A stretch of DNA of 64,000 bases, from contig NC_087245.1 in the NCBI RefSeq assembly GCF_037042905.1, forward strand, positions 26,970,001-27,034,000. Direction: 5' to 3'. Position numbers and translations under genes: made by a program. The notes beneath the pieces are model-generated. The model saw nothing but the letters and a program-made list of their open reading frames with translations, ran no database searches and was not told the DNA's origin. This document shows, piece after piece, positions 6,709 through 53,661 of the stretch. The stretch's first letter is position 1, and every line of letters begins with the position of its first letter. This DNA is from Lytechinus pictus (taxonomy: Eukaryota).

Positions 6709-6775
6709 ATGTTCACCATGAAAACTGTGGCGTTGAGTGTTGCCCTACTTCTGACTGCGGTCGTTTCAACTTCAG
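6709..6775 (+). CDS. Coding exon 1, signal peptide MFTMKTVALSVALLLTAVVSTS
   Basis: Acceptor TAG at 6671-6673, ATGs at 6709 and 6718, Lys followed by a hydrophobic core, donor CAG|GTATT, phase 1. Confidence 0.85.
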
Positions 6776-12700: not shown

Positions 12701-13734
12701 CACCATTCACACATGCACTTTCTCATTTTGAGTTCCATTTCTCAATATAACACTCCCACCCCCTCGAACCAACATCTCTCTCCCTCTGCAAGCTCCCTTT
12801 CCATCACTTTCTGTTGAACTCCTGGTCTCGATTTTTCTTTCTATATTGAATGAATTTTTGTAAACATATATTTTTATTAAATACGCTAACACTTTTTGAG
12901 TATTAATTGGGGTGCCAGTCGTATAATACATAACAAATATGACCACCTTAAAAGAATCGACCCTTTTTTACTCTTAGCACAAGTATGAATTTTCCCAAAC
13001 ACGTTACCATTATATTCATTTATTCATGATATGACATGTACGTGTCTATTTTCCGTTCTTTGCCCCGTGGTCGATATCAATCTATTCTGTTGTCATTTCA
13101 AGGACGAAAAGCGGACAAGGGAAATGCTGAGACGGTGGTCGAGAGAGTACGGGGTGGTGGTCGATCTCAAAATAGAAACCGAAATGGTAAATACTTATAC
13201 AGTACATCAATAAATATTATAACTCAAGGTGGCCATATAACGTTGTGTCAAATACCGTGTGGGGAGGGGATAGAAAGGCATTTGAAGATGTAGAATGAAA
13301 TTAAGATTACACATATAATAGTTGATGATGATGGTGATGATGATGATGATGGTAATGGTGGAGGTGGTGGTGAACCTCGATTTTTGCATTTGTGAGAATC
13401 ATGTACTGTAAGTCTAGGCCTACTTATTTGTGGATTTGCCTTAAACTTTAAATCCTTTAATGTGTGTGTTGTATTTATATTGTTTATGTGGATTCAAAAT
13501 ATAATAAGCACAATCAAATTTGTACAGACACTTCAAAACATCTGTGACTGAAAAAAAAAATCCTCGCTTAATTTCTCTGCTGGGGAAAATATTTATAACA
13601 CAATAACTTTACGTAATAAAATTTAATTATTTATTTATTTATTCAGTTTTATTTCAACAGGGTAGCCCCATCAGTAATTTAAATACTGTTTTACATGGAG
13701 GCCCTGCATAACAAAAGAACACATTGAATTACAA

Positions 13735-13797
<63 letters not shown>

Positions 13798-16700
13798 AAA
13801 CAAAAGATAGTAATAGTAAACAAAGTCAATTGCCAACTCTGCCAGTCAAACTTATCAAGAAAATCATATAAGAACAACATCTTGAAAAACAAATCATTGC
13901 ATCTAGAAAAGAATATGTTAAAATAAAAGAAAATCATAATGAATATTTCAACAAAGAATATCATGGTAAACAATGGATGATATAATTTGGATGTTATTTT
14001 CGGCAATTGAACAAAAATTTTCAGTTTATTTCTTTACAACATATCACAGACACTGACAGGTATCTGACACTTTTGACTGTACAGCTCATTTTTTTTCCAC
14101 AGTCCAGAATTCCTTTAAACTGTGACTTTCAATTGTAATGGTATGACACATTGGTAAGATCCGTCCTTTTGTCCGGGCGTTTTGTTCAGAAAATTGTTCT
14201 GAAAGAACTAGAAATGATATTGGAAGATAATCAGGTATTCACCATTGTTATAAACCAATGACGATTACTTTATTTTGACTTACCCCAGAGTGGAGGACGT
14301 TCACATGTAGGAGAGGACAAAGAGAGCTAGTCTTTGAAGATCTTACCGAGAATGAGAAACTGGAATATGAAATGACAAGCTCTGCCGAATCTTTTTCCTT
14401 CAGTTTCTGTCGAAATAAAAATGGAAAGAACTGTCTTGAGATTGGTAAGAGATAAAGAAAAAAATATAGGCCTATATTCTTAAGAGTAAAAAAACAAAGC
14501 TTCTGAGAATCTACGCTTCTTATGTATCCCCTGTCTCCAAGAATATTCATTTCTTCCTCATTCCAGCTCATTGAACTTTTTTTTACTAGTCAATCATGAA
14601 TATGTTTCACAAGTGTCCAAAATCTAACATGTATATGATAATGTCAATGAAATACATGAACATTGTTCTATAACTTGTTTTTCATAGTGCCTTTACGAAA
14701 CTATTGTCGTGGTATTGCCTATAATTTCTCGTATTTCTTAATACTGTTTATTGAAAGGTTAAGAACTTAACGTATGTCACATTATAGAACGTACTATGGA
14801 TACTATACTTTGTCATTTTTCATTTCATTATTTTTGTTTTCGCTTTGGAGAGCTAGCCATATTAGGACATCTGTAAAGACACAAAAACTTGTATTTGCAC
14901 TTTACTTTTTTTTTACAGTACTAAGCTCTTCTGGTGAATCGACCATGAAATTTAATGGTGAAGATTTGTGCCTCCCCATTGGATCATTCTACGAAAAAGA
15001 GAAGAGGTTTTCCTTCACAATCATCTACACCCGGTATTGTCTGGTTGTCAGGAACGTTTTATCAGGGGTTGAACTTGCTGCATCGGTCGAGAGTGATGAA
15101 TTGAGTGGTTTCAACTACTGCTATGCCACTTCCAATGGTGGAGGAGATTCTTCGCTACAGATTAAGGAGCTTGAATGTAAGTTGAGCCACTACACAAAAA
15201 TCCCTGTTGGAAAAAGAAACTACCACAGTGTGTTCACAGTGTGGTTGCATTATGTTCACGTTGCATTCGCAGTGAGTTCACATAGTGTTCCCAGTGTGTT
15301 CACAGTGTGTTCACAGTGTATTCACTCTGTATTCGCAGTGTGTTCACAGTGTATTGGCAGTGAGTTCGCATTTCGTTCGCAGTGTTTTCACAGTGTATTC
15401 ACTCTGCATCCGAAGTGTGTTCACAGTGTATTCGCAGTGAGTTCAAATTGTGTTCACGGCATATTCACTCTGTATTCGCAGTGTTTTCACAGGGTGTTCA
15501 CATTGTATTCGCATTGTGTTCACAGTGTGTTTGCACTCTATTCACAGTTTGTTCGAATAATACATGTAAGTGGACAATGCGGAGATGTAATTCACACTGT
15601 TGAATAATATTGTGTTCCACACTGTAAACACACTGTGAGCACACAGTGTTCTGCTCAGTAGGGATATAGGAAACGTAATATATTACTTCACCTCGATCAC
15701 AGGACCGTTCCGTAAAGAGATCCAACTATGGCAACTTTGCCAGTATTGTATCTACCATGGAAACCTCGATTTCAAAGTTACCATAGTAAGTCTTTATGGA
15801 ACGATCCCTACATGTCTTTTCTAAACTTTTCACAGCTAAACCTGAAAATCCCGTTGTTCAAAAGAAAATCAAAGAAATAGTTTCTGTTTCTGTCTGAAAA
15901 GGGGGAAGGGTGAGTGACCTGTTGGGTCATGCTGAATAGCTTTAACTTGTTAAATATTATGGACCCGATTTATTTGGCTTACCATCATGCATAGATTATT
16001 CTTTAGTTGCTTATTTTGACTTCAGTGTACCTTGTCTGGTAATTATTCATGATCTGACTATCATTGAACATCTTTCCTATTTTACACTTTGCGCCATAAG
16101 GTAATTATGATTCATGCGCATTAGTTTGATTTGATTTGATTTATTGTTTTCTTCTGCATTCATAACATTCGTATACAATACAATTTTCATTACGTAACAA
16201 ACATAATATATCGGTAATTGATTTGGTATGAATCATAAAGAAAAAAAAATAAAAAGGTCATTCTAAACAAATATGATCTACTACCGACAAAGAAAATAAC
16301 ATTTACAGTTTGCAGGAGAAGGATTAGCATTATAAGCAGATTGTTTGAAAAAAAATGACAACCCCGGTTTAGTTTGGTAAGTAAAAGGTAGTATAAAATA
16401 CGCTTTAAAGTCTCATATAGAAGGTGTTATTTCGCTGATATCAAAAGGGTATATTTTTATTTAACTAGATCGTTGTAATACACAAACATATCTGTATTAT
16501 CTATAATAAACAAACATATCTGTATTATTTATAATACACAAACATATCTTTATTATTTATATATGTATGTATATACTGAAAAAACCATTGACCATGTTTG
16601 CAATCACATTAAATCATTTATGACATCCAGCCCTAATCATAGTGTTCACTTTATCCCTTTCCAATGTTTAAGTTTCCGGAACTGAGATCTCGACGTTTAT

Positions 16701-22700: not shown

Positions 22701-25700
22701 ATTTCGTGAATATCATTTTGATAAAGGACGTTTACTCTGTCATGTCTGAATATTATAATAAAACGTAGTACTCCGATTTTCGGATATTAAAGTAGATGTT
22801 GCAAACGAGTAAATAAGAGTTCTCGTGAATTCCTTGCACGTAATGGTATTAGATCCCCAAAACATAGCAGAAAAGATTAACAAGTCTTCCAATAGTCTTG
22901 ACATTTAGCACGTAACTTAATGCCAATCTAATCAAGTTGGATTTAAAATTGAATTAGAGTAAAATACACTCAAACATGATTTCACGTCGGTGAATGTTTC
23001 CATTTTTTCACAGATTCCGATAGCAGTTCAGAAAGCAAAGAGAAAAATGGCAAAGGAGGTAAGGTTAATTTATTGAGAATATTCCTCGAAAAATAACATT
23101 CATGTAGTAATTAGTAATAATGGTATTCAAGATTAAAGTATTAATCATGCATTCCAATTCCAAACATGATTCGATGTTGGTGAAAGGAGGTGAGGTTTAG
23201 TCTACATCCGAGTTATTAGGGATATTCCTTAAAACTAATATCCATGCAGTAATGAGTAATTTTGGTATTCGAGAATGAAGTATACCCCATGTATACCCAT
23301 TATTTTTTGTGTATGACTTGATTTTGCTTAAAGCTTAGAAGAGATTTCATGAATTTCAATTTGATAAGGGACGTTTATTCTGTCATGTCTGAATATCATG
23401 ATAAAGTGTAGTATTCTGATTTTCGTATTCAAGTACTAGTAGATGTTGCAAACGAATAAATAAGAGTTCTCGTGAATTGCTTGCACGTAATGGTATTAGA
23501 TCCCTAAAACATAGCAGAAAAGATTAACAAATCTTCCAATAGTCTTGATATTTAGCACATAACGTAATGTCAAACTTTTAAAGTTAGATTTAAATTGTAA
23601 AAGAGTAAAATACACTCAAACACGAGTTCAAGTCGTTGAATGTTTTTTGTTGTTGATAGATTCCGATAGCAATTCAGGAAGCAAAGAGAATAATGGCAAA
23701 GGAGGTAAGTTAATTTATTGGGAATATTCCTCAAAAAATAAAATAGGAATCAGTAACAATGGTTATCAAGATTAAAGTATTCATCATGCATTCCACTTAT
23801 ACTTTGATTATGAAATAAGATATAATTTATTTAAGTTATTGAGATAAATATTTTGAATCATGATGATTACAGGAGGCAAAGTCGAAGTTGGAAATGCAGA
23901 AGTTGATTTTGGACGACAGCGTGGAGGACGTGGCAAGAAAGGAAAAGGTAATACTATGATGCAGCGGTAAATGCAAATAGCAAACGAAAAGGTCATTTTG
24001 ATTGGTCACTTGGTTTTTAATGAACAGTTCCGTGGTTACCGATTATAAATGTCAATATCTGGTAGTCATAAAATAACTAAACTTTGCCGCTTTAATTTTG
24101 TATCAATAGGTTCTAGTGAAAGCAGTTCAAAAAGCAGGGAGAAATCAGGAAGACGAGGTAAAATATTAATGTGATTAGCCTTTGTCGTTATTAAACACTC
24201 TTTTGCTGGTTTATTAGGCCTTTTCTTTCATAACCGTGATACAGTAATAACCTATAAGCCCGTTGGTTTTAAGGACATCTTATGTCGACCTTGCGATACA
24301 GGACAAGTCAGCTTGTTGAAAAGATGCCCTCACAAAATGTCAATGACATATATCAGGAATAATGCCGACCCAAGTGCTGAGCCTTGTGGCACCCTGAGAG
24401 CACACTGGAAAAGATGAGATCTGCCAGGAATCCTATGATCCAACCATGTTTTAGGCCCGTAATCCCATAATTCTCCACTTTGCCATGCAACTTCATGTGT
24501 TACACCTTGTCAAAAGGTAGATCTTTAGGCTTCTTATACGCTACTGCCTTAATGCCAATGTAAATCATGTAATTATCGAGTTAATTGTTGATTTTAGGGC
24601 CTTGCTGAAAACAAAGGCTGATTTTATAGGTATTTTTTTCTATGATTTTACTTCACAAAAGCTCAAACTAAGAAATCGTTTCTTTAGAGATGGTTTGAAT
24701 TTGAGTCTTACCAATAATTACATATTATTTTGTTGTGAAGGATGGCGTACTTTTCAATGTCGACGGGGCGAACGTGAACAGGTGCTTAGAGGGCTATCTG
24801 AGAACGGAGATCTGGAGTTTGAATTTGGCAGCACTGATTCCGAATCGATCAGGATCGAGTTTACCAGGAGCAAGAATGCCTTCGACGACAGTATCGTTAT
24901 TGGTAAGAAAGGGGAATATCATGATATTATCATCCAAAATGTTTATGAAATAAACCCTGATATTTTATTTTGCGCAAATCCTTTTCTCCGAAATGGTAGT
25001 ACAATTAAAGCACTTATTATATTCTGGTAAATCTACGGAGCATTAATTATCAAAGTTTGGAGTCACATATTTTGTATGATAAATCATATTTTTAGTGAAA
25101 TATTGAAGGAGAAACACCTGTCCCTTAGAAAATCATTTATAGACGTATTGGATCCTGAGCGGAGAGGAAAAGAAAGAAAAGGAGAGAGAAAGAGAGGTAT
25201 AAAATAAACTGATGTTTAATCGGATATTAAATTTCGAATATCATCTCCAACAGTTCTAAGTTCTTCTGGAGAATCATCCATCAGGCTTGGTGGACAGGAT
25301 TTGTGCGAGCCAATGCTGGGCTCATTTTACACACTTGGCTTGGAGTTTTCCTTCAGCATCAGATATGCATCAGGGAGACTCGTTGTCAGTAATGATAATA
25401 TTGAAGGAGCAGAAATGGTGGCAGTGATCGACGAGGATGTACTGGTCGGTTATAGGTTCTGTTATGCAACTGTAAATGGTGGATCGGACGTTACAACGTC
25501 GCTGAACGTCAAACAGATCGAATGTAAGTAAGCTTATTCACACCTTTGTATACTGGGGGATCGGTGGCAAAGGATTAAAAGAATTGTCACCCCCATAAAA
25601 AGGAGACTTTTGACATGTTAAACAAAAAATATATATATCCTATCAAACTATTCAAACTTTTGTTTTGCCCAATTACGAGTTTTCAGCATTGGCGGCGGAA

Positions 25701-42278: not shown

Positions 42279-42337
<59 letters not shown>

Positions 42338-45300
42338 CTAGTAGTAGTAGCAGTAGTAATATATTATTTGTTGAACTACAAGGAGTACATGTAGAATTAC
42401 AAATAAGATAAATAGCAATGGTCATCATCAACATTGTCATATGAAGTATTAAGAAAAGGATGAGGAGGCTATAAAAAGAATGATGAGAGGATGTGGTGCT
42501 GGTGATGGTGGTGGTGATGTTGGTGGTGGTAGTGGAATTATCTGTTGATCTTGTTGTTGCATCAGACTCACTGGGATCTTTTATTCATTTCACGCAGATG
42601 TAAAAGAGACAGTTGTCCCTGAAGTCGCAGAGCCTGGTAAGTCAAGTTATGCTAAAATTTTACCCCATATCCCCAGGATGAGTATATCATACCTATCTTG
42701 GTTCTGTAACACAAAGCTTAGCGATTAATTGTATGCTTGATGTTTGTGATTGATTGTCCATTCATTGTAGTCAGTGCAATTATGTTACAGGCTCCAGAGG
42801 ATATACACCCTGGGCAATGGAAACCTATACCCGACACGGGTCTTTCCAACTGACAAGATTCATACTGGCTATAAAGTGCTCACTACTATCAAGATCCTAC
42901 CATGGTCAAAATTAGGTTCTATCCCCAACATATCCCACAACTGTACACTTCTTTCAAAAACTTCTCAAGAAATAAACTGCGCTTATATGTATGCTCATTG
43001 TAATATTAAATGATATGTCATTAACTTTGCCCTTCATAATGATAATGTTGCTGAATATATTTAAACAGGAATCATATTTTGTAGGGTGTTTTTATCCATC
43101 ATATCTACATGTAAACATATATATTTCATATTAGTTTTGTATACATGTTTTTTACCTCTGTAAAATTTTTTTTCAACAAATTTGCATTATTTTACATAGC
43201 CTCCACTTCTTTTTCTTCTCTCCATTATATAGCTGTGAAACCATTCAATGAAGAGCCTGGTAAGTTCTATGACCATATTCAATAAGGTTTCTAGCAAAAA
43301 AAAGTGCTGGGACAAGTTCTACAAATGCGAAATACACCCATTAAATATCCAACAATGGACAGCGGACTCTTCCAATATATTCATGATTAGTAACTTCTTT
43401 GGTTGTCATATAAACTTTGGAGTTTAAGTCCAATCTGAGGATTACTTAATGGACATGAAATTGATGAAATTCATGAAATTTGAAACCACAAGGCCAATTT
43501 AAAGAAATTTAAAGCTGCTACAGGACAATAAGAAACACTGAAGGACGATGGGAGATATACGGTTTTTTTACTGAAATATAAAAAATAACAAGATATTGAT
43601 CTTTATCAAGCTTTGGTTTTGATATTATTGATTATCATTTACCGTAATCATTACTATTTATGATTGTAGGTTGCTTGTTTAAATTGCTGTTCATTCATTT
43701 TTGGCCCGCAAATCTGACTGTACCAGGAGCCATTTCATAAAGCTGTTCGTAAGTTAAGAGTGACTTTAAGAATGACCGGTAATCCCTTTTTTGTGGTAAA
43801 TAATATTCACCATTAAATGTTAATTTGTGATTATTTAGCGCATAAGAAAGGTTCACCAGTCGTTCTTAATGTCACTCTTAACTTACAAACAGCTTTATGA
43901 AACACTCACCAGGGCCTATGTTTGATTAAACAACTATAGGCATCTATATTTGATTAATTTGTGTACCTGAAAAACTATTCAAGAAGAGATAAAGTTTTCA
44001 CTTATTATTCTGTCTTCCCCCTGTTAGACGAGTCGGGTATAATACAAACTCAACCTTCTGGTGATGCCCAGTTCTTTGACCAGTCTTTGGATATTGATCG
44101 TCTATTACAGCTTCAGTTTGATTTCAGCGTGACCATACCAAAAGGTTTCTCAATCCTTTTGACACAAGAACAATTCCTTCATGGAGATTATTATTCAATC
44201 GGTGAGAATATATCTTTTTCTCTTAAGTACTAGTTCTCAAGATTATTTGACAAACATTTATTTCATACTAGCATCTTGAGCATGTCTGAACATTTTGTCA
44301 TCCATACAAGAACAAAAAGGTGATTTTTTTTCTATTTAGACTTTCATAAATGTTCCACTTTCCTAAATTTCTAAATATGAAAATATTTGCTGTAAAATGT
44401 GTTCGACTTGGGATGCTTGCCCCCCCCTAAAAAAATAAGAAAAGAAACTCTTTTTTTTCTTTCCTTTAAAAAAAAATTAATAGTATTCTTCATCTGACAT
44501 GAGACTGTATTGGGATGCAAATGGGTATGTTGAGAGTTGATCATAAGTTGTCATGGAATACTTTGTGAAAATTGTAACTCCTACCAAATATACACAACAA
44601 AAAAAGTAAGTCCCCCCTAAATCAAATTACTGTAACTTTTGAATGGAATAATTTCAAAATATGAAATTTCGTAGGTGGTTTTCTACACTCATTATGCAAC
44701 TCCTGAAGAAAAATGAGATTCATTGATTTAGTCATGCATGAGAAATCAAAGATTGAATTAAAAATTACCATTTTTGAAAGTCACAAGAGTCGATTTCAGA
44801 TTGTGTAAATACAAAGTTGGGCAAATGTTGTTTTTAGGTGAATTTCATGGTGTTAATGCTGTTTTACTGTCCATCATTTAGCCACTTCACACAAAATTTT
44901 GATATCGTATGTTTATGGTTGAGTGAGCACAATGTTTTGTGACGTATTATCATAGGGGTTTATGGCAGTATCCCCTATACAACTTATTAAACATGTTAAA
45001 ATTGGAAAATGTTGGTGGCTCCCCCAATTACTCGGCCCCTCCCCAATTTAAAATTCTGGATCCACCACTGATTTGTCCATAAATTCAACTGATCCTGAGA
45101 AATTGCTAGGAAAATAATGCATTTATGCAGTATAAAGAGTATTCATTCCCAAGTTTTCGAATGTGCTCGCTCAACCATGAAAATGTAAAAAGTTCAGAAA
45201 GTGTGTGGTGATAAAACTGATGGATGATAAAAACAACAGCAATTAAGTCACATTTGAAACCGAATTTGCCCCCATTATTCGCTTAATTAACCCCTTAAAA

Positions 45301-47789
45301 TGAGTCTGTGACATTGAAAATGCCTCTTTTCCCACTTTGATGCATGCTCACTCATCCATGAATAAACATATCGATTTCATTTTTGCACAGAATTCTGCCC
45401 ATAGGTTGATAAACATAACTGTCAAATGACATTGCTAACGACAGCCTTGAAAAAAAGTTCCACCATATTGAATAAGGGGTCACTTATTCTTAAACATATG
45501 AACCCAAAGTGTACACAATGTCTATGAGAGAGGAAGTCAAAATTTTAACAAAAATGAAATGAGGGTTTGTTTCATGGACGGATTTTGTTACTTCTGCCAA
45601 CAATTTTTTTCATGAAACTTCGCACATAGCTTTAGATTTACACTATCCAAAAGGCGCGCACACCAAAATAGTCATTCGATATGGCACAGAGTGGGGCCAA
45701 GGCCTTAAACTTTCTTCTCATTTGCATAATTTTCGAATATTATGTGCTCACTGAAGCATTAGACATCGGGATTTTCATAAAAATCAAATCAAATGAACTA
45801 TGCAAGGTTTGTGACAGACATCCATAGTTAGCAATTGCATTTTTTCCAATACCATAAAAAAGAGCTAATTGCATTCCACATGTTCATTCAAGCATGAATG
45901 TTTAATTAAACTTATTTGAATCATTGAAACATGTTAATTGGTCATGAACATAACAAAAAAAATTGAGAAAAGATCATTTCAGTTACCAAAATGAAACAAT
46001 ACTTGCCTATGATATTTGAAATTCGTATTTTTTGCTTTCATTAAATGTTCATTGGTTCGTGAAACAATGAATATTGTTGAAGATACTCTTCCCAAAAATA
46101 ATTGTCATCATATTCGATCATTTTTATCGATAGAAATGTGTAAAAAAATCAAATTATAGCAAATTTTAACTTGTGTTGATTCAACCGTGAAATTTAGCAA
46201 AAACATTGTATCGTATTTTAGAAAGTACCTTTTACAAGCCTTCTGACTATTTTTCATGAGAATGTGGAATTCGTTCTAATAAAGTGGAATCAAAATCATG
46301 ATATTTGGCTTGTGACTTTTGAAAAGTGACAATTTTGCCTTCTGGCGGTGCTCACTGAAGCATGACATAAAATACGTCCATAACATTTACTCAGAGGGTA
46401 GCTTATAAAATTACCTACACGCTCATGTAAAAATATATCGAAAACTCGCATTGGTTCGTAAATTATGGATGTTTGTTTAAGGGGGACTTACTTTTTTGTT
46501 GTGTATATCTTACTAAATTTGGACTACAGGTACCTGCAAACACTGATGGACTGATTGTGGGGTTTGTTTTTTCTTGGTCTTATTTTAAATAATTACTGAT
46601 TTAACAGGGATTAAATTGTTTATTTCATTTTATCGTTTCATGCTCTATGTCAGGCATAACTGAAGGAAATGAATTCATGGTTATGCGATGTAACACAGAA
46701 ACTAACCAATGCGATTCCCTCTACGCCGGACCAATTGAACAAATTGTAAGTGAACTTATATCAAATTAATTTCACCCAAATTAATGATGAATATCTGCCG
46801 TTTGTACTTTTCGTCAACTTTAGTTTACCTCCTGCCTTCCTAGCCTTTTCAGAGAGCCCTATATTTCTCCCTATTCTAAATTCATTTATTTTAATCTTTC
46901 CACTAATAGTTGTGCTTAGAGATTTTTGTTCTATTTCTGTATAGTGTATATCATATCAGGATTTTTGTGTTCAAATGTAATTTGATTCATGTTTCCTCCA
47001 CATTATCTTTGAAAATTGCATGTAGATAATTGAACTTGTTTCGACATGAGAATATACAGTTATCTATGACCTGACATTGATCATTTGTGGAGGCATATTT
47101 GCAACATTTTGATTTGAAAATCAGGAATTGAGGACAGCTGTGCAGGACATAGCGGCATGCAAATCAATTTATGAATATATGGAATTTAAATAATTTGAAT
47201 TAATTGATAATAAGCATATATCCATGTATGTATATATTACATGTCAGGTAATTTCTTAAGAAAAGGTATTGGGACTGTGAGTCATCCATGCCTAATATAT
47301 CATGGTTTTCTCCTGTCCCCCTGCCACACCATGAAGGGTTTATATATCCTTCTCAGGATATGCACTATTATTAAAGTTGCTTTCTTGATCTGTTCTTTTT
47401 AAGGGCGAGGTGCTAGGAGCATATATATTCACTCTGAAGATTCAGAAGACATTCGATGACAAGGATGACCATGACGGAGCATACTCCTACAAATTCACAT
47501 TGCTTTATGGAGGAGCTGTGGTCGGACAGGAGGTGGTGGTCGAGTATCCAGATACTTTCTATATCAGGTACATTGGATGCACTTCTGAAGGGTACTTGGC
47601 GACATGGAAGATCTTCTCAATTGTATCACCTGGTACGTTTCAGTTGGTCATGCTCACTTTATTTTGAAAAAAGGTAGTTAGAATTTGATGATATTGGCAA
47701 TGAGAGAGAAGCAGAAAGAGCCATTCCTACACAAGGGCACTGACTGCTGCTGATAAAGTTCCAGAGGAAAATCATTAATATGTGTAAAG

Positions 47790-47836
<47 letters not shown>

Positions 47837-50800
47837 TATGTGTGTGTGTGTTCGTGTATGGGTAGTGTGTGTGGGTAGGTGGGTGAGTGTGTGGGTGTGT
47901 GTATTTGGATGAGGTTGTATGTATTAGGGCAAGATTATGTGTGAATGCATGTGTGGGGGTGGGATGAGTGTGCATTATTATGCGTTAGAAAGAGAATACA
48001 TCAGATTAATCATCGTTAATGCAAGAAATTAACCCCACTGAGTACCGTAGATAATGTATTTCATATATGCGCTAAACGACAACCTGCAACTCGATGAAGT
48101 GATTGTTTAAAAGAGTATTTTACAATATTTCCGAATTTTGATGTTTGCAATTGTCAGAATGTTCCCAGTGGAGTAGATCATGTGCATTCATGAGTCACAT
48201 GACCTTCTTCCACATTTGATACAGGTACTACTCAGAGGTCGTCTTCAATCATTCTTCGGGATATTGATGATTCTTGCAGTCTGGAAGTGGATGTGTTTGA
48301 TCGCGAGCTGGTATTCAGTGTAGAAGCAGAAGAATTGCTCTACATTCATCTGTACACCAGCAACGGCATGTACATACTCCGTAAGTTGAATGTTGTCGAA
48401 TTCCTCTTTCACTTCCTCCTAATCTTCTCCTTCTTCCTCCTTCATCATCACATTTTTCCTTTTCCTTTTCTTCTTCTTCCTTCGCCAAAGATATGTTGTT
48501 TTGACTGAGACATTGTTGTATAGGCCTATACTTCCCATTGGCACTGATAAGTGGACCCCATAAATATGCAGCAAATTGTCTCTCATTTCCTTGGATTCTC
48601 CAAGCCCGTCACTAGCTTATTTCTTGAAGGAGAGACTTTTCTTAATGTTCAAGGAAGAAGAATTGTCAGAGGGAACAAAGTCTTACCAAGATGGGTTAGG
48701 TGCCCTCACCTTCCAATGGAAACACTCCAGAAGTAGGATACAGATTATCAGGGTACAACTTTATTTCTGTGATGACCGGCCAGATCCTTCATTTCAAAAA
48801 ACTTTTTTTTATTATCTAACTGATCTCTTTGATTTTTATCCAATTCAATTGATGAATAAGTTGCACATTCTATGAACTACTACATGGAAGACCAAATCTG
48901 GCAAAGTACTTTATTGTAGATTCTCAGTTCCCTGTGATTGTTTCTTTATATGTCATGGTACTGCATGGAACTCTTCACTCCTTTCCACGGTACCCCATGC
49001 TACTCTACATGTATGCTGCTTTCCATGGTACTTTCACAGTTTTCTATGATACTTTCAGAGTACTCCATGTTACTCTCACAGTTATCTATGCTCCCATAGA
49101 ACTCCATGGTACTTCATGGAACTCAGTACTACTTTCCATGGTACAACATGGTATTCCATGGTACTTTCACAGTTTTCTATGATACTTTCAGAGTACTCCA
49201 TGTTACTCTCACAGTTATCTATGCTCCCATAGAACTCCATGGTACTTCATGGAACTCAGTACTACTTTCCATGGTACAACATGGAATTCCATGGTACTTT
49301 CACAGTTTTCTATGATACTTTCAGAGTACTCCATGATACTCTCACAGTTATCTATGCTCCCATAGAACTCCATGGTACTTCATGGAACTCAATACTACTT
49401 TCCATGGTACCACATGGTATTCCACGGTACTTTCACAGCTTTCTATGATACTTTCATAGTACTCTAAGGTGTTTCCATGGTTCTCTCTCATACCCTAAAT
49501 GTTCTTTCTGAAACTACCCCAGGTGTTGGAGACAACAGCAACGAATACGTTACAGGATCCCTCGGTGAGGCAACGTCTCCTGGCGATGCCTCTCGTCGGG
49601 TTCAAGAAGGTGTGCTGAGTCTTTCAGGCAAGCAGTACTACCTATCCTGGAGAAACAGCAGGATTAAGTTTGGAGAATCAGCAGAGGACAGCGAAGCGAT
49701 GCTAGACTGGGTCATTGGGGAGGAGATCTCGGTGTCCAAGCTAGAGTTTGTTGCTAAGGTGGACAGCGTGTATCTTATTCACACCTACAAATACTTCTAT
49801 TTATATGGTTAGTAGAACTTAAATGATGTAATATAATTGTATTGATGACACCTGATAAGGTTGCTAGATTTGCGTTAATGTATTACTCTAACCTGTAATT
49901 TAACTGAAGTTTACATTTCAGCACCCGCATATTGTTTATTTAACGTTGGAAAAGAATTATGATTTATTTTTCATATAATGCTTAAGTTTATATAAAGTAA
50001 AATGGATGTCATCATTTTCTCTTGTTTCTCCTAACTATATGTATCAACATGTGTACCTCTTTATGTTTTGTGTGAAATACGAACGAAATAGCACAAAAAA
50101 CGATCCAGAAATAACTTTTTACTTTTGTGATATACTGTATATACAGTATGCTGGCAGGAATATAATGATAAATTCAATGCTTTTGAGTTTTGTCTCAAGC
50201 CTATTACATCTTTTTCTAAAACCTATAGCCAATGTTCTGCAATGGACCCATGACCGCATCCGAGCAACATCCCTTACTTTCTTCCGGCTTCGATATGAGC
50301 GAGGTGCACCATTCGTAGACCTCAAGATCAAAGCTTCAGGTACTGTCTTGATTGCACTTGCCACAGACCAGGCGCACCCAGAGTCAAGCATGAGTTTGAT
50401 ACGTAAGTTGACAGGAGATTACCGGAATTACCTTGGACTCTTTACTTAATATGATTGTGTTGAGTGATATATTTTGTTCTAAAATATTTCATTTGTATCA
50501 TTACCGATCATTGACTTGTATGTTGATAATTGAAGAGGAGGATCATGAATAAAATTATCGAAATCACATTGTCAGATGGCCATTTCAACGAAAAAAAAAT
50601 CATTCCTACGGCCTGTTTCACCGAGAACTTGCAATCATTTGAGCTTTGCCATTTAAGATAACTGACATGGCAAAAGAGCTCAGCAGCTGATCAAAGTCAA
50701 AGTTTCCACTGTAGATATACTGTCAAAGTTACGATAATTAGAAATCTTCACGAAGCAGACCCTAGGAATAATAACCTTTAGACAGAAAATATGTATGACT

Positions 50801-53661
50801 TTGCTATTAACCACAGTTTTCATATAATAGTATAACTACTTGGGAGAAAATGCTCTCAGTGGATGTTCATGAGTCTTACTTTTAAAAGTATGAAGATTTA
50901 AATGTCATTGTTATTTTCTTACCATTCTTTCTATTTTCCTCTCCAGATATGAGTTCCCGGAAGATATCTCTCTCGGAGTGCCTTGGTTGTGAAGCCATCT
51001 CCTCCGTCACCATCCGTGAAGACCAGCCAGCCCTCCTGGATCCGTCCTTGTTCCTGGAGTATCAGATAATATTTGAAGATGGCATTCTTAAGATCTTCTC
51101 CACCACCCAAGAAGCTGCATTATTTACCTACGATGGCATCCAGCAAGGCACACTCTTTTTCTATGATGGTTTCGGAGGAACGATCGGTAGCTACTACCAC
51201 ATCAGACTCAACCAGGGTGAGTCAAGATAAGAGACTTGGATTTAAAGTTTAAATAACAAATTTAAACAATGAAGAGTAAACCCTTCATGAATTTCATGAT
51301 AGATGGGTGTTTAATATAATAAACAACCAGTAATATTTCATTGACAAATTTGCTCTGGCCAATCAGATACAAGGAAGTTGATAGCTTAAAACAATAGTCA
51401 GTGAAAATGGTTCCACGACATTTGCTCCGGCGACGATCGCTCTGATGAAAAATCTGCATGTTAATCCAAGCCTAAAATCTAACCTAAAAAACTGAATAAA
51501 CCCTAATCCTTATCTTTGCATTATTCTGAACCAAAAACTCTATTTACATTTACTGGGATGTTAAGATAAGGGCAAATGTCGCAGGGGCACATGTCGTGTC
51601 ACCGTGAAAATTAGTGTTTCATGAAATGCTTCCAAAATAACTTGCATTGCAGTAATGGCGAAACAAAGTTTGAATCTGATTTCATACCATTGCACTAGGT
51701 TGTCAGGTTTACAGTTGATGTACTTACTAACATTGTAATACCATGTAGGATTACTATATAAAGTATGCAATAATGTTATGATCAATGTTTTTTTATCAGG
51801 AACTATTTACCGAGCAGAGCATTGTCATGATATAAGCACATACTTGGATGGGGGATTGAAGCTACTGAATATTCAACATTCTGATCAGATGATTGCTTTC
51901 TTTGATGAAGAGGTCAACCTGGAAGCAGAGCTTGGTAAGTGCAGTCAAATCTGTTGGTGGTCACCTGTCTATAGCAGCCACCTGCCTATAGTGACCACTA
52001 AAACGGATTCCCATGGAGAGGTAGATTGTGTGTATAAGAACCTGTCTCTAGCACCAACCTTCCTATAATGACCACTGAAGTTGAATCCCATGGAGGTAGA
52101 TTGTGTGTATAAGATTAAGTTTTGTGTTTCCCTTAAGTGGCCACTACAGACAGGATTTACTGCATATGAATCATACAAATTGTATTTTATCAGGTCAAAG
52201 ATTGTAGCTACTCACAATTCACAAGTGCCTTAATTTAAAGTCATGTACATGTATGTGCCCTTGATTTGGGGCTCACAAACACCTTGGGGCAACATTTGAG
52301 CAGTAAAAACATGATATGTACTCTAAAAATTCTTTATGATATTTGTAATTAGTGAAAACATATATTTTGATACATTCACATCTACACAAGATAAATGCAT
52401 TAATAGTGTACAGATAATGCATAGGTTTACATGTATTGTGTTAGAGGATATCTAGGATTCCTTGGTATTTGCCATGTTGTGCAAAAGCACCACTGTAAAT
52501 ATGGCAGAGCATGCTGCAGTGCCAGCAGCACATTCACACTTAGAATTATTGTATATCTGATATCTTGGGTAGATGTGAACAGACTGGTATATGTAATGGC
52601 AGTACAGTTGATAGAAATAAGAATGGACATACCATAATGCTGTGAAATCTTAAAAATATCAGTAAAAATGATTCAATGGCAAGATTCTTGAGACATGATC
52701 ATGATTCTCAATAAATCAAATATGTTTGCCTTTTGTAGGGAACAAAAGGAGCTACCTCCAAGTGCCTTTTCATAAATGAATTTTAAAAACTTCAAAATCA
52801 TGATTTAGAGCCAGCGGGCACATTTCCATAATCAATGTGCAATAGTTCTTGTCTACTGCTCATATGACCAATGAAGTGATGTGACATACATCACAGGCAA
52901 CTGGAAATTTGTATGCTCTTTCAAATCGCACTCACAGCATTGTGACCTATTCCCCTCCCTCCATCACATGATATACACTTTTAACATTATTAATGATGCA
53001 TAAGGCTGATAGAATTTCCAAAGGGTGGTTTTCATTTAATAACTATCTGCAAAAGTTAATCTTTCATTTTTGAATAATCACCCAACTCTAAGCATTAATT
53101 CAGACCAGAATATGCAAAAAAATGTGTAATAACACCTTGAAAGTCAAATTTCATCTAGTTGAAAAAATTATCTGGTCCAAAGAGACTCAACTTGGGCAGA
53201 GTTACCTGAAATTGTTATTGTCCATCGTCTATTCGTCTCTCCACTGCATTTTCATTTCAGCCATGGAAGACACAAGGACAGAGCTGCGTACCTCCCGCGG
53301 TGGCAACGCCATCGACATGACAACTAATCCCAGTTGCATCTACCATGACCCCTCCACTCTAGTCTGGCTCTCTTTCACCGATGGGGCTATTCAATATGGT
53401 ACCTACGACAAGGAGAATCACCAGAGAAGTGACCCGTGTATGACCTTTAACCTCCACGAGGGTCATAAGGTCAAGTACATCTCGTTTGGCCGACAGCGTC
53501 CAGAGTGGAGTTTGAGACATCACTCCATTGAGAGGAAGGTTGTCTACAAGCAGTTGATCACTCGTGTGAAGAGTTCTGTACTTGTAAAAGGCCCTCCCAT
53601 ACGTGTGAACGGCCCTCTCAAACGTGTGAACGGTCCTCCCGTTCGTGTAAATGGTCTTTAG
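6709..53661 (+). CDS. Large secreted multi-exon protein (~2,410 aa, 53 coding exons): signal peptide, G/R/K/S/E micro-exon modules, nine FAMeT-like domains, Pro/Glu/Thr/Ala mucin-like stalk, RGD motifs
   Basis: Manual join of the exons listed below. All have AG acceptors and GT donors (one GC), the frame is continuous, the lengths sum to 7236 nt and the join ends in TAG 53659-53661. All introns are phase 1 except 46746-47403 (phase 0). The stop-containing copy at 19158-19193 is excluded. Confidence 0.85.
7226..8817. mobile_element. Non-autonomous hAT-like DNA transposon (outer element)
   Basis: TIRs CACTGGCGTAAATCC / GGATTTACGCCAGTG; 8-bp TSD ACACACTC at 7218-7225 and 8818-8825. Confidence 0.85.
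7333..8424. mobile_element. Nested non-autonomous hAT-like element with internal GCGAGCGCGAAGCGCGAGC repeats
   Basis: Imperfect TIRs CAGTGGCGTACC / AGTTACATCACTG with poly-G/poly-C subterminal tracts; TSD TATTTCCA/TATGTCCA; ~110-bp internal repeats. Confidence 0.75.
9173..9196 (+). CDS. Micro-exon VSAGGSYN (end of signal peptide)
   Basis: tttttacAG acceptor, G|GTAAGG donor, 24 nt, phase 1-1. Confidence 0.75.
9944..9985 (+). CDS. Micro-exon VADNNDRFTHSGGS
   Basis: cAG acceptor, CAG|GTGAG donor, 42 nt, phase 1-1. Confidence 0.75.
10534..10617 (+). CDS. Exon GLQGLNIQQSGFTKVSHSTSEKTITTEN
   Basis: cAG acceptor, G|GTAAAT donor, 84 nt, open in phase 1-1. Confidence 0.75.
11005..11073 (+). CDS. 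Micro-exon ESNKGTMKNQRGDTETTQERSRK (contains RGD)
   Basis: Pyrimidine tract plus aAG, AAG|GTAACG donor, 69 nt. Confidence 0.7.
11492..11569 (+). CDS. Micro-exon GKKNKQNEETEVKQRGGDRRKNGDDN
   Basis: ttttaccAG acceptor, G|GTATG donor, 78 nt. Confidence 0.8.
12158..12244 (+). CDS. Micro-exon GRRKGDKGHTETVIERVREGGRRKDKDRS
   Basis: tAG acceptor, G|GTAAGA donor, 87 nt; paralog of 13103-13186. Confidence 0.8.
12561..12608 (+). CDS. Micro-exon GSKGGSSEGQRNRGNG
   Basis: tAG acceptor, GAG|GTAAAG donor, 48 nt; A-type module. Confidence 0.8.
13103..13186 (+). CDS. Micro-exon GRKADKGNAETVVERVRGGGRSQNRNRN
   Basis: aAG acceptor, G|GTAAAT donor, 84 nt. Confidence 0.8.
13735..13792. repeat. (TA)n microsatellite
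   Basis: Direct reading. Confidence 0.95.
14289..14444 (+). CDS. Domain 1 exon a (EWRTFTCRRGQRELVFEDLTENEKLEYEM...CLEI)
   Basis: cccAG acceptor, G|GTAAGA donor, 156 nt; clear paralog of 24741-24902. Confidence 0.85.
14919..15176 (+). CDS. Domain 1 exon b (VLSSSGESTMKFNGEDLCLPIGSFY...CYATSNGGGDSSLQIKELE)
   Basis: ttttacAG acceptor, T|GTAAGT donor, 258 nt; paralog of 25254-25523. Confidence 0.85.
15201..15664. repeat. Degenerate 11-bp tandem repeat (CACAGTGTGTT), probably a MITE interior
   Basis: Repeated cacagtgt(g/a)tt units; weak inverted ends TCCCTGTTG / CAGTAGGGA. Confidence 0.7.
16673..16732 (+). CDS. Micro-exon FSGTEISTFIGRYRGKGRGG
   Basis: aAG acceptor, G|GTAAGT donor, 60 nt; positional paralog of 25824-25889. 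Confidence 0.75.
17687..17767 (+). CDS. B-type micro-exon GRGQVEVGNTDASNGRGSGRRGKKGGK
   Basis: cAG acceptor, AAG|GTATA donor, 81 nt. Confidence 0.8.
18037..18081 (+). CDS. A-type micro-exon GSDESSESNENGGKG
   Basis: cAG acceptor, GAG|GTAAA donor, 45 nt. Confidence 0.8.
18478..18546 (+). CDS. B-type micro-exon GGQVGNADVAYGRQRGGRGKKGK
   Basis: cAG acceptor, AAG|GTAAT donor, 69 nt (6-nt in-frame deletion relative to sister copies). Confidence 0.75.
18770..18814 (+). CDS. A-type micro-exon DSSGSSESKENSGKG
   Basis: tAG acceptor, GAG|GTAAGG donor, 45 nt. Confidence 0.8.
19158..19193 (+). pseudogene. Degenerate A-type exon copy with in-frame stop (DSDSSYKKYGK*)
   Basis: Splice sites intact, 9 nt shorter than sister copies, GGA changed to TGA at 19190-19192. 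Confidence 0.7.
19359..19433 (+). CDS. B-type micro-exon GGQVEVGNAEAAYGRQRGGRGKKGK
   Basis: cAG acceptor, AAG|GTAAT donor, 75 nt. Confidence 0.8.
19704..19748 (+). CDS. A-type micro-exon DSSDSSESKEKKGKG
   Basis: tAG acceptor, GAG|GTAAGG donor, 45 nt. Confidence 0.8.
20192..20236 (+). CDS. A-type micro-exon DSDSSSGSRENNGKG
   Basis: cAG acceptor, GAA|GTAAGG donor, 45 nt. Confidence 0.75.
20407..20451 (+). CDS. 5'-truncated B-type micro-exon xAYGRQRGGRGKKGK with a deletion-created acceptor
   Basis: Original acceptor deleted; tttttgaaAG at 20405-20406 gives a 45-nt phase 1-1 exon. Confidence 0.45.
20566..20768 (+). mobile_element. tRNA-derived SINE, internally deleted
   Basis: Head GGAGCGTTGTGGCCCAGTGGATTAG (A box), (TAT)n/(TAG)n tail, TSD TAGTAGTG; empty site in the sister unit at ~19546-19553. 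Confidence 0.85.
20919..20963 (+). CDS. A-type micro-exon DSSGSSESKENSGKG with GC donor
   Basis: Same sequence as 18770-18814, but the donor is GAG|GCAAGG. Confidence 0.55.
21313..21915. mobile_element. Non-autonomous TTAA-targeting DNA transposon (Kolobok-like ends AGG...CCT)
   Basis: TTAA|AGGACAAGTCCACC ... GGTGGACTTGACCT|TTAA with long subterminal inverted repeats; empty site cgtaacTTAAtgcc at 22911-22924. Confidence 0.9.
22012..22056 (+). CDS. A-type micro-exon DSDSSSGSKENNGKG
   Basis: cAG acceptor, GAG|GTAAGT donor, 45 nt. Confidence 0.8.
22225..22299 (+). CDS. B-type micro-exon GGKVEVGNAEVDFGRQRGGRGKKGK
   Basis: cAG acceptor, AAG|GTAAT donor, 75 nt. Confidence 0.8.
23014..23058 (+). 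CDS. A-type micro-exon DSDSSSESKEKNGKG
   Basis: cAG acceptor, GAG|GTAAGG donor, 45 nt. Confidence 0.8.
23660..23704 (+). CDS. A-type micro-exon DSDSNSGSKENNGKG
   Basis: tAG acceptor, GAG|GTAAGT donor, 45 nt. Confidence 0.8.
23873..23947 (+). CDS. B-type micro-exon GGKVEVGNAEVDFGRQRGGRGKKGK
   Basis: Same sequence as 22225-22299; cAG acceptor and GT donor. Confidence 0.8.
24110..24157 (+). CDS. Micro-exon GSSESSSKSREKSGRR
   Basis: tAG acceptor, GAG|GTAAA donor, 48 nt; paralog of 29761-29808. Confidence 0.8.
24330..24530 (-). mobile_element. Degenerate CR1/L2-clade LINE reverse transcriptase fragment
   Basis: Minus strand reads FDKV*HMKLHGKVENYGITGLKHGWIIGFL and, after a frameshift, VPQGSALGSALFLIYVIDI (RT motif GVPQGSVLGP). 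Confidence 0.75.
24741..24902 (+). CDS. Domain 2 exon a (GWRTFQCRRGEREQVLRGLSENGDLEFEF...SIVI)
   Basis: aAG acceptor, G|GTAAGA donor, 162 nt. Confidence 0.85.
25254..25523 (+). CDS. Domain 2 exon b (VLSSSGESSIRLGGQDLCEPMLGSFY...CYATVNGGSDVTTSLNVKQIE)
   Basis: cAG acceptor, T|GTAAGT donor, 270 nt. Confidence 0.85.
25824..25889 (+). CDS. Micro-exon FSSDFLSEFVSRYGSRVRERVR
   Basis: cAG acceptor, GAG|GTAAAT donor, 66 nt. Confidence 0.75.
26409..26492 (+). CDS. Micro-exon GNLGRNVGDAEVEAERTRGRKRGKGNSK
   Basis: cAG acceptor, AAG|GTAGA donor, 84 nt. Confidence 0.8.
27372..27515. mobile_element. Small MITE inside the LINE
   Basis: TIRs CAGGGGCCGCGGAAC / GTTCCGCGGCCCCTG; 5-bp TSD TGGAG. Confidence 0.85.
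27650..28636. mobile_element. Non-autonomous Tc1/mariner-type element inside the LINE
   Basis: TA|CAGTGCGTATCAAAAAAAAGTTTACACTTTGAAAAA ... inverse|TA. Confidence 0.9.
29761..29808 (+). CDS. Micro-exon GSSGSSSESKDRSGKR
   Basis: ttctAG acceptor, GAG|GTACA donor, 48 nt. Confidence 0.8.
29907..30072. mobile_element. Palindromic MITE
   Basis: GCCCCGTTGC...GGTAACTTTGCCATCCAATGGTAACT mirrored; same family as 55415-55579. Confidence 0.75.
30708..30791 (+). CDS. Micro-exon GNRNRNGGDSEVENDSDGGRRRGNGRGR
   Basis: tAG acceptor, GAG|GTAAAT donor, 84 nt. Confidence 0.75.
31243..31329 (+). CDS. Micro-exon ESRRKEVGYTETASRRNRYKDRRQWGSRR
   Basis: cAG acceptor, GAG|GTGGG donor, 87 nt, open in phase 1-1. Confidence 0.65.
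31516..31677. other. Assembly gap (162 N)
   Basis: Direct reading. Confidence 1.
32022..32051 (+). CDS. Micro-exon GGSWRSRRGK
   Basis: cAG acceptor, T|GTAAGT donor, 30 nt. Confidence 0.7.
32075..33788. mobile_element. Non-autonomous Tc1/mariner-type element with ~300-bp TIRs
   Basis: TA|CAGTGCGTCTCAAAAAAAACTATACACTTTTGAAATGGCTGCC ... inverse|TA; 32075-32370 mirrors 33500-33788. Confidence 0.9.
34364..34630 (+). mobile_element. tRNA-derived SINE (same family as 20566)
   Basis: GGAGCATTGTGGACCAGTGG A box and GGTTCAAATCC B box. Confidence 0.8.
34704..34859 (+). CDS. Domain 3 exon a (FYRWRTLSGKERSHALHL...FDLEFCMAPNGKDCLTA)
   Basis: tAG acceptor, T|GTAAGT donor, 156 nt; shares WRT and FC...NGK.CL with domain 1a. 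Confidence 0.85.
35375..35632 (+). CDS. Domain 3 exon b (YMSTQDDSRAYVDYKG...IYMSTPDGKWTKVKIRLRR)
   Basis: tAG acceptor, A|GTATGT donor, 258 nt. Confidence 0.85.
36483..36641 (+). CDS. Domain 4 exon a (MGKKLTSSGG...FYFCFDRSNCYIA)
   Basis: tAG acceptor, G|GTAAGG donor, 159 nt. Confidence 0.8.
37248..37520 (+). CDS. Domain 4 exon b (DLSTQPTETSQITYQG...ASTDDGDFTELQMIEIE)
   Basis: tAG acceptor, AAG|GTATC donor, 273 nt. Confidence 0.85.
37904..38056 (+). CDS. Domain 5 exon a (ASREISSETSLERTTV...LILSRSDGSSYTI)
   Basis: Long pyrimidine tract plus cAG, A|GTAAAT donor, 153 nt. Confidence 0.8.
39046..39321 (+). CDS. Domain 5 exon b (KMSTKPTDSSVIITG...IRTEGGGIQDFSEEEVE)
   Basis: gcAG acceptor, AAG|GTAGG donor, 276 nt. 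Confidence 0.85.
40028..41290 (+). CDS. Large exon: ~30 x EPPPAETEAPAT mucin-like repeat, then EPDEGTRGDSPVVELPRNRG...STDES
   Basis: catAG acceptor at 40027, CAG|GTATA donor at 41290, 1263 nt, phase 1-1; same frame as ORF 41149-41376. Confidence 0.9.
40030..41115 (+). repeat. Coding 36-bp minisatellite, ~30 copies
   Basis: Unit GAGCCACCACCTGCAGAGACTGAGGCACCAGCAACA with few variants. Confidence 0.95.
41759..42146. mobile_element. MITE, with a related fragment at ~17035-17270
   Basis: Inverted ends ATAGAGTAC...TGACATCA / TGACATCA...GTACTCTAT; internal blocks shared with 17035-17270. Confidence 0.6.
42144..42360. repeat. (TAG)n microsatellite
   Basis: Direct reading. Confidence 0.95.
42598..42636 (+). 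CDS. Micro-exon DVKETVVPEVAEP
   Basis: gcAG acceptor, CTG|GTAAGT donor, 39 nt. Confidence 0.8.
43233..43259 (+). CDS. Micro-exon AVKPFNEEP
   Basis: tAG acceptor, CTG|GTAAGT donor, 27 nt; ends like the previous exon (GAGCCTG|GTAAGT). Confidence 0.75.
43723..43912. mobile_element. Palindromic MITE
   Basis: TTTCATAAAGCTGTTCGTAAGTTAAGAGTGAC mirrored by GTCACTCTTAACTTACAAACAGCTTTATGAAA. Confidence 0.75.
44028..44201 (+). CDS. Domain 6 exon a (DESGIIQTQPSG...FDFSVTIPKGFSILLT...YYSI)
   Basis: tAG acceptor, G|GTGAGA donor, 174 nt. Confidence 0.85.
44593..46503. mobile_element. Non-autonomous TA-flanked DNA transposon
   Basis: TA|CACAACAAAAAAAGTAAGTCCCCC ... GGGGGACTTACTTTTTTGTTGTG|TA; no transposase ORF. 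Confidence 0.85.
46654..46745 (+). CDS. Domain 6 exon b1 (GITEGNEFMVMRCNTETNQCDSLYAGPIEQI)
   Basis: cAG acceptor, ATT|GTAAGT donor, 92 nt, phase 1-0. Confidence 0.8.
47404..47632 (+). CDS. Domain 6 exon b2 (GEVLGAYIFTLKI...IRYIGCTSEGYLATWKIFSIVSP)
   Basis: aAG acceptor, CTG|GTACGT donor, 229 nt, phase 0-1; FAMeT-like C-terminal motif YIGxxxxGxxxxWKI. Confidence 0.85.
47791..47975. repeat. (TA)n followed by a TG-rich simple repeat
   Basis: Direct reading. Confidence 0.9.
48225..48380 (+). CDS. Domain 7 exon a (GTTQRSSSIILRD...LVFSVEAEELLYIHLYTSNGMYIL)
   Basis: cAG acceptor, C|GTAAGT donor, 156 nt. Confidence 0.8.
48950..49480. repeat. 133-bp intronic tandem repeat, ~3.5 copies, built from CCATGGTAC subunits
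   Basis: Unit starts at 49021, 49154, 49287 and 49420. Confidence 0.9.
49523..49807 (+). CDS. Domain 7 exon b (RVGDNSNEYV...VLSLSGKQYYLSWRNSRIKFGES...MLDW...YFYLY)
   Basis: ccAG acceptor, G|GTTAGT donor, 285 nt; resembles the FAMeT core (ILS....R.FWISW..G.I.VG.....FL.W). Confidence 0.85.
50229..50402 (+). CDS. Domain 8 exon a (ANVLQWTHD...VDLKIKASGTVLIALATDQ...SLI)
   Basis: tAG acceptor, C|GTAAGT donor, 174 nt; resembles the FAMeT F.VKA..DAHIAL motif. Confidence 0.85.
50947..51216 (+). CDS. Domain 8 exon b (HMSSRKISLSEC...LLDPSLFLEYQIIFEDGILKI...YYHIRLNQ)
   Basis: ccAG acceptor, G|GTGAGT donor, 270 nt. Confidence 0.85.
51800..51934 (+). CDS. Domain 9 exon a (GTIYRAEHCHD...NLEAEL)
   Basis: cAG acceptor, G|GTAAGT donor, 135 nt. 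Confidence 0.8.
53261..53661 (+). CDS. Terminal exon: domain 9 part b (VWLSFTDGAIQYG...VKYISFG...W) plus GPPxRVN tail and stop
   Basis: tttcAG acceptor at 53260, TAG at 53659-53661; FAMeT-like motifs. Confidence 0.85.

Follow-up and report, generated by a model that had tools for sequence, protein, structure and literature searches.

A sea urchin gene encoding nine tandem modules, probably all of the Methyltransf_FA type and five of them invisible to Pfam

The window analysed here is a stretch of 64,000 nucleotides (nt) from the sea urchin Lytechinus pictus (assembly GCF_037042905.1, contig NC_087245.1, positions 26,970,001 to 27,034,000 of the forward strand), and it contains the gene LOC129260138, which RefSeq labels 'uncharacterized protein'. 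The species assignment agrees with an intronless three-domain Methyltransf_FA protein of this genome, which is 100% identical to an NCBI entry for L. pictus. Isoform X2 of this gene, XP_063955385.1 (2366 amino acids, aa), maps at 100% onto positions 6709-53661 of the window, and peptide mapping gives about 57 coding exons from the start codon at 6709 to 53661. Nine modules of about 140-165 aa, D1 to D9, follow one another along the protein; each of them, like the linker between D5 and D6, matches XP_063955385.1 at 100%. The original prediction, made from the DNA sequence alone, had placed nine modules and their exon pairs on the plus strand, and they are present at those positions. Our exon model, built from stop-free stretches and splice signals on the plus strand, comprises 20 exons between 14289 and 53661, and its boundaries are all AG/GT and phase 1, with the sole exception of an extra D6 intron in phase 0. 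The gene and its PF12248 (Methyltransf_FA) label are already in public annotation, and taken alone it is an annotated, uncharacterised gene. What is new is that nine modules are present, against the one or two seen by Pfam, that D1-D5 are a Pfam-invisible subfamily of the same predicted fold, so far found in sea urchins only, and that their descent is marked by the intron position of the family. The features of the locus are listed below, with the evidence for each after the semicolon; the isoelectric point is abbreviated pI.

6709..6774, plus strand: first coding exon, with start codon and signal peptide (MFTMKTVALSVALLLTAVVSTS); residues 1-22 map at 100%
9172..13185, plus strand: eight small exons of a basic, Gly/Arg/Lys-rich N-terminal region, aa 23-194, pI 10.4; peptide mapping, limits approximate by a few bases
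14289..14444, plus strand: D1 first exon, 156 nt, phase 1/1; exon model and protein map
14919..15176, plus strand: D1 second exon, 258 nt, phase 1/1; exon model and protein map
16675..24159, plus strand: ~13 micro-exons (45-81 nt), aa 333-584; protein map
24741..24902, plus strand: D2 first exon, 162 nt, phase 1/1; exon model and protein map
25254..25523, plus strand: D2 second exon, 270 nt, phase 1/1; exon model and protein map
25826..32051, plus strand: ~7 micro-exons of an Arg/Gly/Ser-rich region, aa 728-861, pI 11.6; protein map, the last one also RNA
31516..31677, no strand: assembly gap (N), intronic; sequence and protein map
34704..34859, plus strand: D3 first exon, 156 nt; exon model, RNA joint 34859>35375, protein map
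35375..35632, plus strand: D3 second exon, 258 nt; exon model, RNA, protein map
36483..36641, plus strand: D4 first exon, 159 nt; exon model, RNA, protein map
37248..37520, plus strand: D4 second exon, 273 nt; exon model, RNA, with D4 modelled as a galectin-like beta sandwich
37904..38056, plus strand: D5 first exon, 153 nt; exon model, RNA, protein map
39046..39321, plus strand: D5 second exon, 276 nt; exon model, RNA, protein map
40028..41290, plus strand: linker exon, 1263 nt, with PAETEAPATEPP repeats; exon model, RNA loose end, protein map
42597..43258, plus strand: two micro-exons between linker and D6, at about 42597-42635 and 43232-43258; protein map
44028..44201, plus strand: D6 first exon, 174 nt; exon model and protein map
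46654..46745, plus strand: D6 middle exon, 92 nt, phase 1 to 0; exon model and protein map
47404..47632, plus strand: D6 last exon, 229 nt, phase 0 to 1; exon model and protein map
48225..48380, plus strand: D7 first exon, 156 nt; exon model and protein map
49523..49807, plus strand: D7 second exon, 285 nt; exon model and protein map
50229..50402, plus strand: D8 first exon, 174 nt; exon model and protein map
50947..51216, plus strand: D8 second exon, 270 nt, D8 being the module nearest to Pfam Methyltransf_FA; Pfam and hhalign
51800..51934, plus strand: D9 first exon, 135 nt; exon model and protein map
53261..53661, plus strand: D9 second exon with C-terminal tail and stop codon; PF12248 match at 23.0 bits, exon model, protein map

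Every module consists of a first exon (a) of 135-174 nt and a second exon (b) of 258-285 nt separated by a phase-1 split, just as had been described from the sequence. The two longer modules that had been singled out are also explained: the second part of D6 is divided into exons of 92 and 229 nt, which makes D6 the only module with three exons, and in D9 the second exon extends into the tail and ends with the stop codon. The motifs quoted in the original prediction are all present. Its picture of the gene needs one correction: ~13 micro-exons lie between D1 and D2, with ~7 more between D2 and D3. If D1b is spliced straight to D2a, a TGA stop results; this is because the ~13 annotated micro-exons intervene, and the stop vanishes when they are included. 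We dropped the idea that D1 and D2 are mutually exclusive, as XP_063955385.1 has micro-exons between them. The nine RefSeq isoforms (X1-X9) differ solely by micro-exon skipping in the D1-D2 array, and all nine modules are constitutive across them.

Transcript evidence covers the middle of the gene most directly. A Logan contig of 2232 nt from RNA run X1 is spliced exactly at the D3a-D3b-D4a-D4b-D5a-D5b junctions, removing five introns (joints 34859>35375, 35632>36483, 36640>37247, 37518>37902 and 38056>39046). At its 3' end, a loose end behind 39321 consists of the first letters of the linker exon, and its 5' part is a 30-nt micro-exon, 32022-32051, spliced to D3a. Further downstream, 14-23% of the words sampled from 47404-53700 are present in runs X1-X4, a value near the exonic share of that interval (~27%, estimated from the exon coordinates). 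The raw RNA runs X5-X7 have no reads on the exons, a result that is uninformative on expression elsewhere. The intron flanked by the exons at about 31242-31334 and 32022-32051 contains the assembly gap (31516-31677). No module is affected by the gap, and the annotated reading frame is maintained from one side of this intron to the other.

The whole protein XP_063955385.1 scores 38.2 bits against PF12248 (E-value, E, 1.5e-9), above the curated cut-off of 24.2 bits, and the record of its Strongylocentrotus purpuratus orthologue scores 40.1 bits. Pfam searches with single exons, where D9b was the sole match, were given up for whole modules because the pieces were too short. With whole modules, the search that had been proposed to check the prediction succeeded in part: D8 (20.0, 18.5 and 22.9 bits in three species) and D9 (16.4 bits for the module, and 23.0 bits when its second exon is searched alone) give sub-threshold matches, D6 and D7 give no PF12248 match as single modules, and D1-D5 give none either as single exons or as whole modules. 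The modules were also compared with the family as profiles, using hhalign. The family alignment for this purpose holds 18 bona fide domains, nine from three-domain echinoid proteins, two from an insect FAMeT (farnesoic acid O-methyltransferase) protein and seven from other L. pictus loci; a word-based protein search with alignment A4, made to deepen it, yielded one match only. Against these 18 domains D8 reaches 96% (P 3e-9), D7 89% (P 2e-6), D6 80% (P 1e-5, 120 columns) and D9 30% (P 6e-4, 102 columns). The 16 nearest language-model clusters of D7 are all PF12248, the best with a score of 0.97 and 199 shared features. Alignment A4 brings the family motifs into register, as with YYSIGITEGNEFMVMRC of D6 against YEIIIGSEGNRKSEIRRC, and D6 bears an insertion. 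A Zona_CL1 match on D6 (E 0.014 and 0.0066) was rejected as sub-threshold and absent in S. purpuratus. The FAMeT character attributed to D6-D9 is thus upheld, although it is weaker than the original prediction implied: judged by these profiles, D6-D8 appear to be remote but detectable Methyltransf_FA domains, and D9 weakly so.

The remaining modules form a group of their own. D1 and D2 are 48% identical, blastp links D1 with D3 (E 6e-7), D3 with D4 (E 3e-10) and D4 with D5 (E 0.004), collinear over the whole module, and hhalign with orthologue alignments gives 98% for D3 with D4, 91% for D1 with D3 and 76% for D1 with D5. By these similarities D1-D5 are clearly homologous to each other. A profile of their second exons (alignment A1), run against 1.84 billion representative proteins, returns the 2366-aa protein with five matches (E 2e-153); the only other clear matches in this public library are the S. 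purpuratus record and short unnamed fragments. In the whole 812-Mb genome the same profile matches the five second exons of D1-D5 and, apart from them, a single exon at C1:23155601, with a weaker score. The latter (C1:23155601-23155828) scores 33.6 bits and has no partner exon recognised within 9.5 kb; it was ruled out as a bridge between D1-D5 and the family, matching the D1-D5 profile only. The divergence gradient along the gene that had been described is not seen, since similarity to the family runs in the order D8 > D7 > D6 > D9, and D1-D5 rank much lower. What is seen instead of a gradient is two classes of module, D1-D5 and D6-D9.

Sequence alone does not appear to place D1-D5 in the Methyltransf_FA family. 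In hhalign comparisons with the 18 bona fide domains D3 and D4 give no match, D1 gives a marginal one (P 0.0018, collinear over 110 columns) and D5 has P 0.034. We place D1-D5 in the family because three other lines agree, namely the predicted fold of D4, the language-model features of D1 and the intron position. That D1-D5 are a derived subfamily which profile searches may miss was the central suggestion of the original prediction, and it is supported by the same three lines together with the blindness of Pfam to these modules. For D1, the nearest language-model clusters are PF12248 (0.92 and 0.90), and 12 matches come from the PF12248 set.

Seven bona fide PF12248 loci at other places in the genome have a second-exon match that starts at profile position 50-56, with a phase-1 acceptor. 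The family split lies after YEI and before IGGW (YEI/x/IGGW, with slashes around the split residue), near profile position 50/51. The phase-1 split of D6-D9 falls at the residue aligned with it in A4 (YSI/G/IT, YIL/R/VG, SLI/H/MS and AEL/A/ME), and that of D1-D5 at the equivalent point, as judged by inspection of the exon ends (LEI/V/LS, LTA/Y/MS, YIA/D/LS and YTI/K/MS). Thus in all nine modules the phase-1 intron typical of the family interrupts the same strand, and does so at one and the same point. This position is a local regularity of this genome and not a curated family criterion; intron position and phase are a useful marker of descent where the sequence signal has gone.

Structure prediction had been proposed for each module, and D4 and D6 were modelled. 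The AlphaFold2 model of D4, made from 17 paralogue and orthologue rows, has eleven strands, a predicted local distance difference test score (pLDDT) of 89 and a predicted template modelling score of 0.87. In the ESM Atlas, its first five family rows are PF12248 clusters with template modelling scores (TM) of 0.70-0.71, among them plant BTB plus FA and arthropod DM9 plus FA proteins; against a 147-aa single-domain PF12248 cluster, 132 residues align with TM 0.71/0.70 and a root-mean-square deviation of 3.1. The expectation of a PF12248-like fold is therefore borne out for D4; for D6 the neighbours are generic concanavalin-like ones, an outcome that, in view of the hhalign support for this module, we do not count as negative. 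Of the top 20 neighbours in the Protein Data Bank (PDB), 10 are common to the models of D4 and D6. A sequence search of the PDB with a bona fide family member yielded no related solved structure, and the rows listed by the two structure searches include no Rossmann-type methyltransferase. As modelled, the fold is a galectin/concanavalin-like beta sandwich and not a methyltransferase fold.

Between the modules lie segments of strongly biased composition. The micro-exons of both arrays (16675-24159 and 25826-32051) are symmetric, phase 1 and 45-93 nt long, and the spacers they encode are polycationic (pI 10.1-11.6, Gly 17-27%, Arg plus Lys 22-29%). In both arrays, basic peptides (GQVEVGNAE..GRQRGGRGKKGK in the D1-D2 array) alternate with Ser/acidic ones (DSSGSSESKENSGKGG). 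The central linker, about 420 aa, has a polyanionic, mucin-like composition (Pro 27%, Glu 23%, Thr 15%), and its exon contains 30.2 copies of a 36-nt unit at 93% match (40031-41116). A second L. pictus record, 98% identical, is without 60 aa of the linker repeat and 146 aa of the micro-exon region; the missing residues reflect either variation in copy number or a discrepancy between assemblies.

Orthologues with the same module order are found in Lytechinus variegatus (LOC121431742, 94% identity) and S. purpuratus (LOC576141, 64% identity), and a literature search found no mention of LOC576141. Between L. pictus and S. purpuratus, D1-D5 are 48-60% identical and D6-D9 59-69%. In LOC576141 the D1-type module occurs in four near-identical copies, with one and the same basic spacer behind each, and the central linker is a Lys/Arg/Asp/Glu-rich repeat where L. 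pictus has the Pro/Thr/Glu one. Both the number of modules and the chemistry of the linker therefore change from genus to genus. In Lytechinus, D1 and D2 stem from a more recent duplication, and S. purpuratus has independently expanded the D1 type.

The explanation that we consider best, with a probability of roughly 0.75, is that LOC129260138 encodes nine Methyltransf_FA-type modules of common descent in one secreted protein, that D1-D5 have diverged, and that the protein is a non-enzymatic binding scaffold. All nine modules would have arisen from one Methyltransf_FA-type exon pair through tandem duplication, which is feasible because phase 1/1 exons keep the frame when duplicated, and D1-D5 would later have drifted past the reach of profile searches. 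The chain runs from the signal peptide and the basic N-terminus through D1-D5, with polycationic spacers between D1, D2 and D3, to the acidic linker and D6-D9. Since the protein is predicted to be secreted and to have a lectin fold, the domain is probably not an enzyme here; it may instead provide nine binding modules on flexible charged spacers, whose length might be tuned through micro-exon skipping. The signal peptide, the charged spacers and linker, and the literature on FAMeT (PMC10015273, PMC9382459) are the reasons why a secreted, multivalent extracellular binding scaffold seems the most likely function, one whose binding partner, tissue and role we purely infer.

Comparison with known systems fits this explanation in some respects and sets the protein apart in others. 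The PF12248 family, represented by arthropod FAMeT and the intronless three-domain L. pictus LOC129271549, likewise has an all-beta domain of ~140 aa in tandem copies; D6-D9 align with it as YxI.xG..N...R.C, then G.I.v, then vG..TG.G, the echinoid genes share the phase-1 intron after the YEI strand, and it is the nearest family to D4 by shape and to D1 by features. Unlike other members, D1-D5 retain hardly any of the family motifs and show a set of their own (WRT, FC....C, LSS/MST, T.(D/G)G), there are nine copies per chain as against one to four in insects (PMC10015273), and LOC129260138 lacks the DM9 partner domain, is apparently secreted and has long charged spacers. FAMeT domains occur in six footprint proteins of the sea star Asterias rubens (Sfp1, 3, 4a, 5, 7 and 8) and are cited in mollusc biomineralisation proteins (PMC9382459). 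The Sfps are similarly secreted echinoderm proteins with FAMeT domains and disordered regions, but they are Cys-rich and have EGF, hyalin, WAP, vWF or other domains, whereas LOC129260138 has FAMeT-type modules only and is Cys-poor (1%). By analogy with these footprint and shell-matrix proteins, the gene is a candidate matrix or adhesive component. A more specific proposal, which is possible but which we regard as doubtful, is that D1-D5 define an echinoid-restricted FAMeT/galectin-like subfamily that escapes every curated profile, and that this subfamily, the alternatively spliced polycationic spacers and the polyanionic linker together make a dedicated extracellular adhesive or matrix protein of sea urchins. 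Such a protein would be a functional counterpart of the sea star footprint proteins, and the enigmatic FAMeT domain would gain a testable binding role outside hormone metabolism. Galectins and concanavalin-like proteins (galectin-2/-8/-9, CBM66, the GH32 C-terminal domain and SPRY) differ from the modules in sequence, with 4-13% identity; no module matches galectin PF00337 at E up to 10, so the likeness is one of fold only, and no galectin sugar-binding signature is evident in the modules.

Several results weigh against a family of nine related modules. No single module attains the PF12248 cut-off, and the merged D1-D5 profile is not significant against the family (E 0.071 and P 0.0075). The folded modules are D4 and D6 only; the D6 model is moderate (pLDDT 69), and its Atlas and language-model neighbours, generic concanavalin-like, are without PF12248. 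The beta sandwich is a common fold, and for D4 a bacterial GDPD-linked cluster (TM 0.75) beats the PF12248 clusters. In language-model features galectin is nearly as near to D1 (0.89). These points would suit a different origin, in which D1-D5 are an independent galectin/concanavalin-like family, gained by exon shuffling, that resembles Methyltransf_FA as a superfold only: in sequence, nothing significant joins D1-D5 to the family, non-PF12248 Atlas clusters score as high for D4 (TM 0.68-0.75), and the 0.89 of galectin for D1 is close to the 0.92 of PF12248. Yet PF12248 ranks first among families by shape for D4 and by features for D1, with its 12 matches, the weak matches given by hhalign run collinearly through 80-110 columns, and no module has a Gal-bind_lectin match in Pfam. 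Moreover, D1-D5 sit in a gene with four PF12248-type modules, and their intron position, intron phase and exon sizes equal those of bona fide PF12248 genes in the same genome. We therefore regard independent origin as improbable.

Two further alternatives concern the protein as a whole. That it is a real farnesoic acid O-methyltransferase with nine catalytic domains is suggested by the family name and the older crustacean literature cited in PMC9382459, and by nothing else. The signal peptide points to secretion, the predicted fold is that of a lectin with no Rossmann-type methyltransferase among the listed structure-search rows, and FAMeT activity has never been demonstrated in a reliable way in vitro, with normal hormone levels in the Drosophila mutant (PMC10015273), so that we find this scarcely credible. 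Alternatively, the nine-module model could be an annotation artefact, with neighbouring genes or pseudo-exons fused by the predictor. RNA proof is limited to the last micro-exon, D3-D5 and the start of the linker, there is an assembly gap within the gene, and the direct D1b/D2a joint gives a stop codon. But the stop vanishes with the annotated micro-exons, the exons are all open, in phase and bounded by canonical splice sites, and annotations of two other species, at 64-94% identity, show the modules in the same order. With the words of 47404-53700 in runs X1-X4 also near the exonic share, an artefact seems very unlikely.

PF12248 is named for an enzyme activity that has never had a convincing demonstration, and a nine-module protein with a predicted signal peptide and lectin fold favours the view of the domain as a binding module. 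The family would also be larger than profile searches show, five of the nine modules here being invisible to Pfam. For echinoderm biology, the gene offers a candidate matrix or adhesive component kept in Lytechinus and Strongylocentrotus, with variable spacers and a module copy number that differs by species.

Three more Methyltransf_FA exons (61, 29 and 34 bits) lie on the plus strand at C1:26884947-26918342, 52-85 kb upstream of the window start, which suggests one or more family genes in tandem with LOC129260138.

Some smaller observations concern the introns. Reads of X5 (8), X7 (11) and X6 (2) cover just 33 intronic bases, 34941-34973; they carry C>G at 34955, differ from the window on both sides of this stretch, and probably come from a short repeat element expressed from elsewhere. 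Minisatellites open in several frames are found at 15190-15600, after D1b (CSQCVHSVFTL-like units), and in the D7 intron at 48900-49460 (units of about 133 nt). Both swell lists of open reading frames and are absent from the annotated protein. Inverted repeat copies with an open frame (..SASQKKLYTFEMAAKQKICH..) are located at about 32075-32222 on the plus strand and 33641-33802 on the minus strand, and the expressed micro-exon 32022-32051 lies directly upstream of the first copy.

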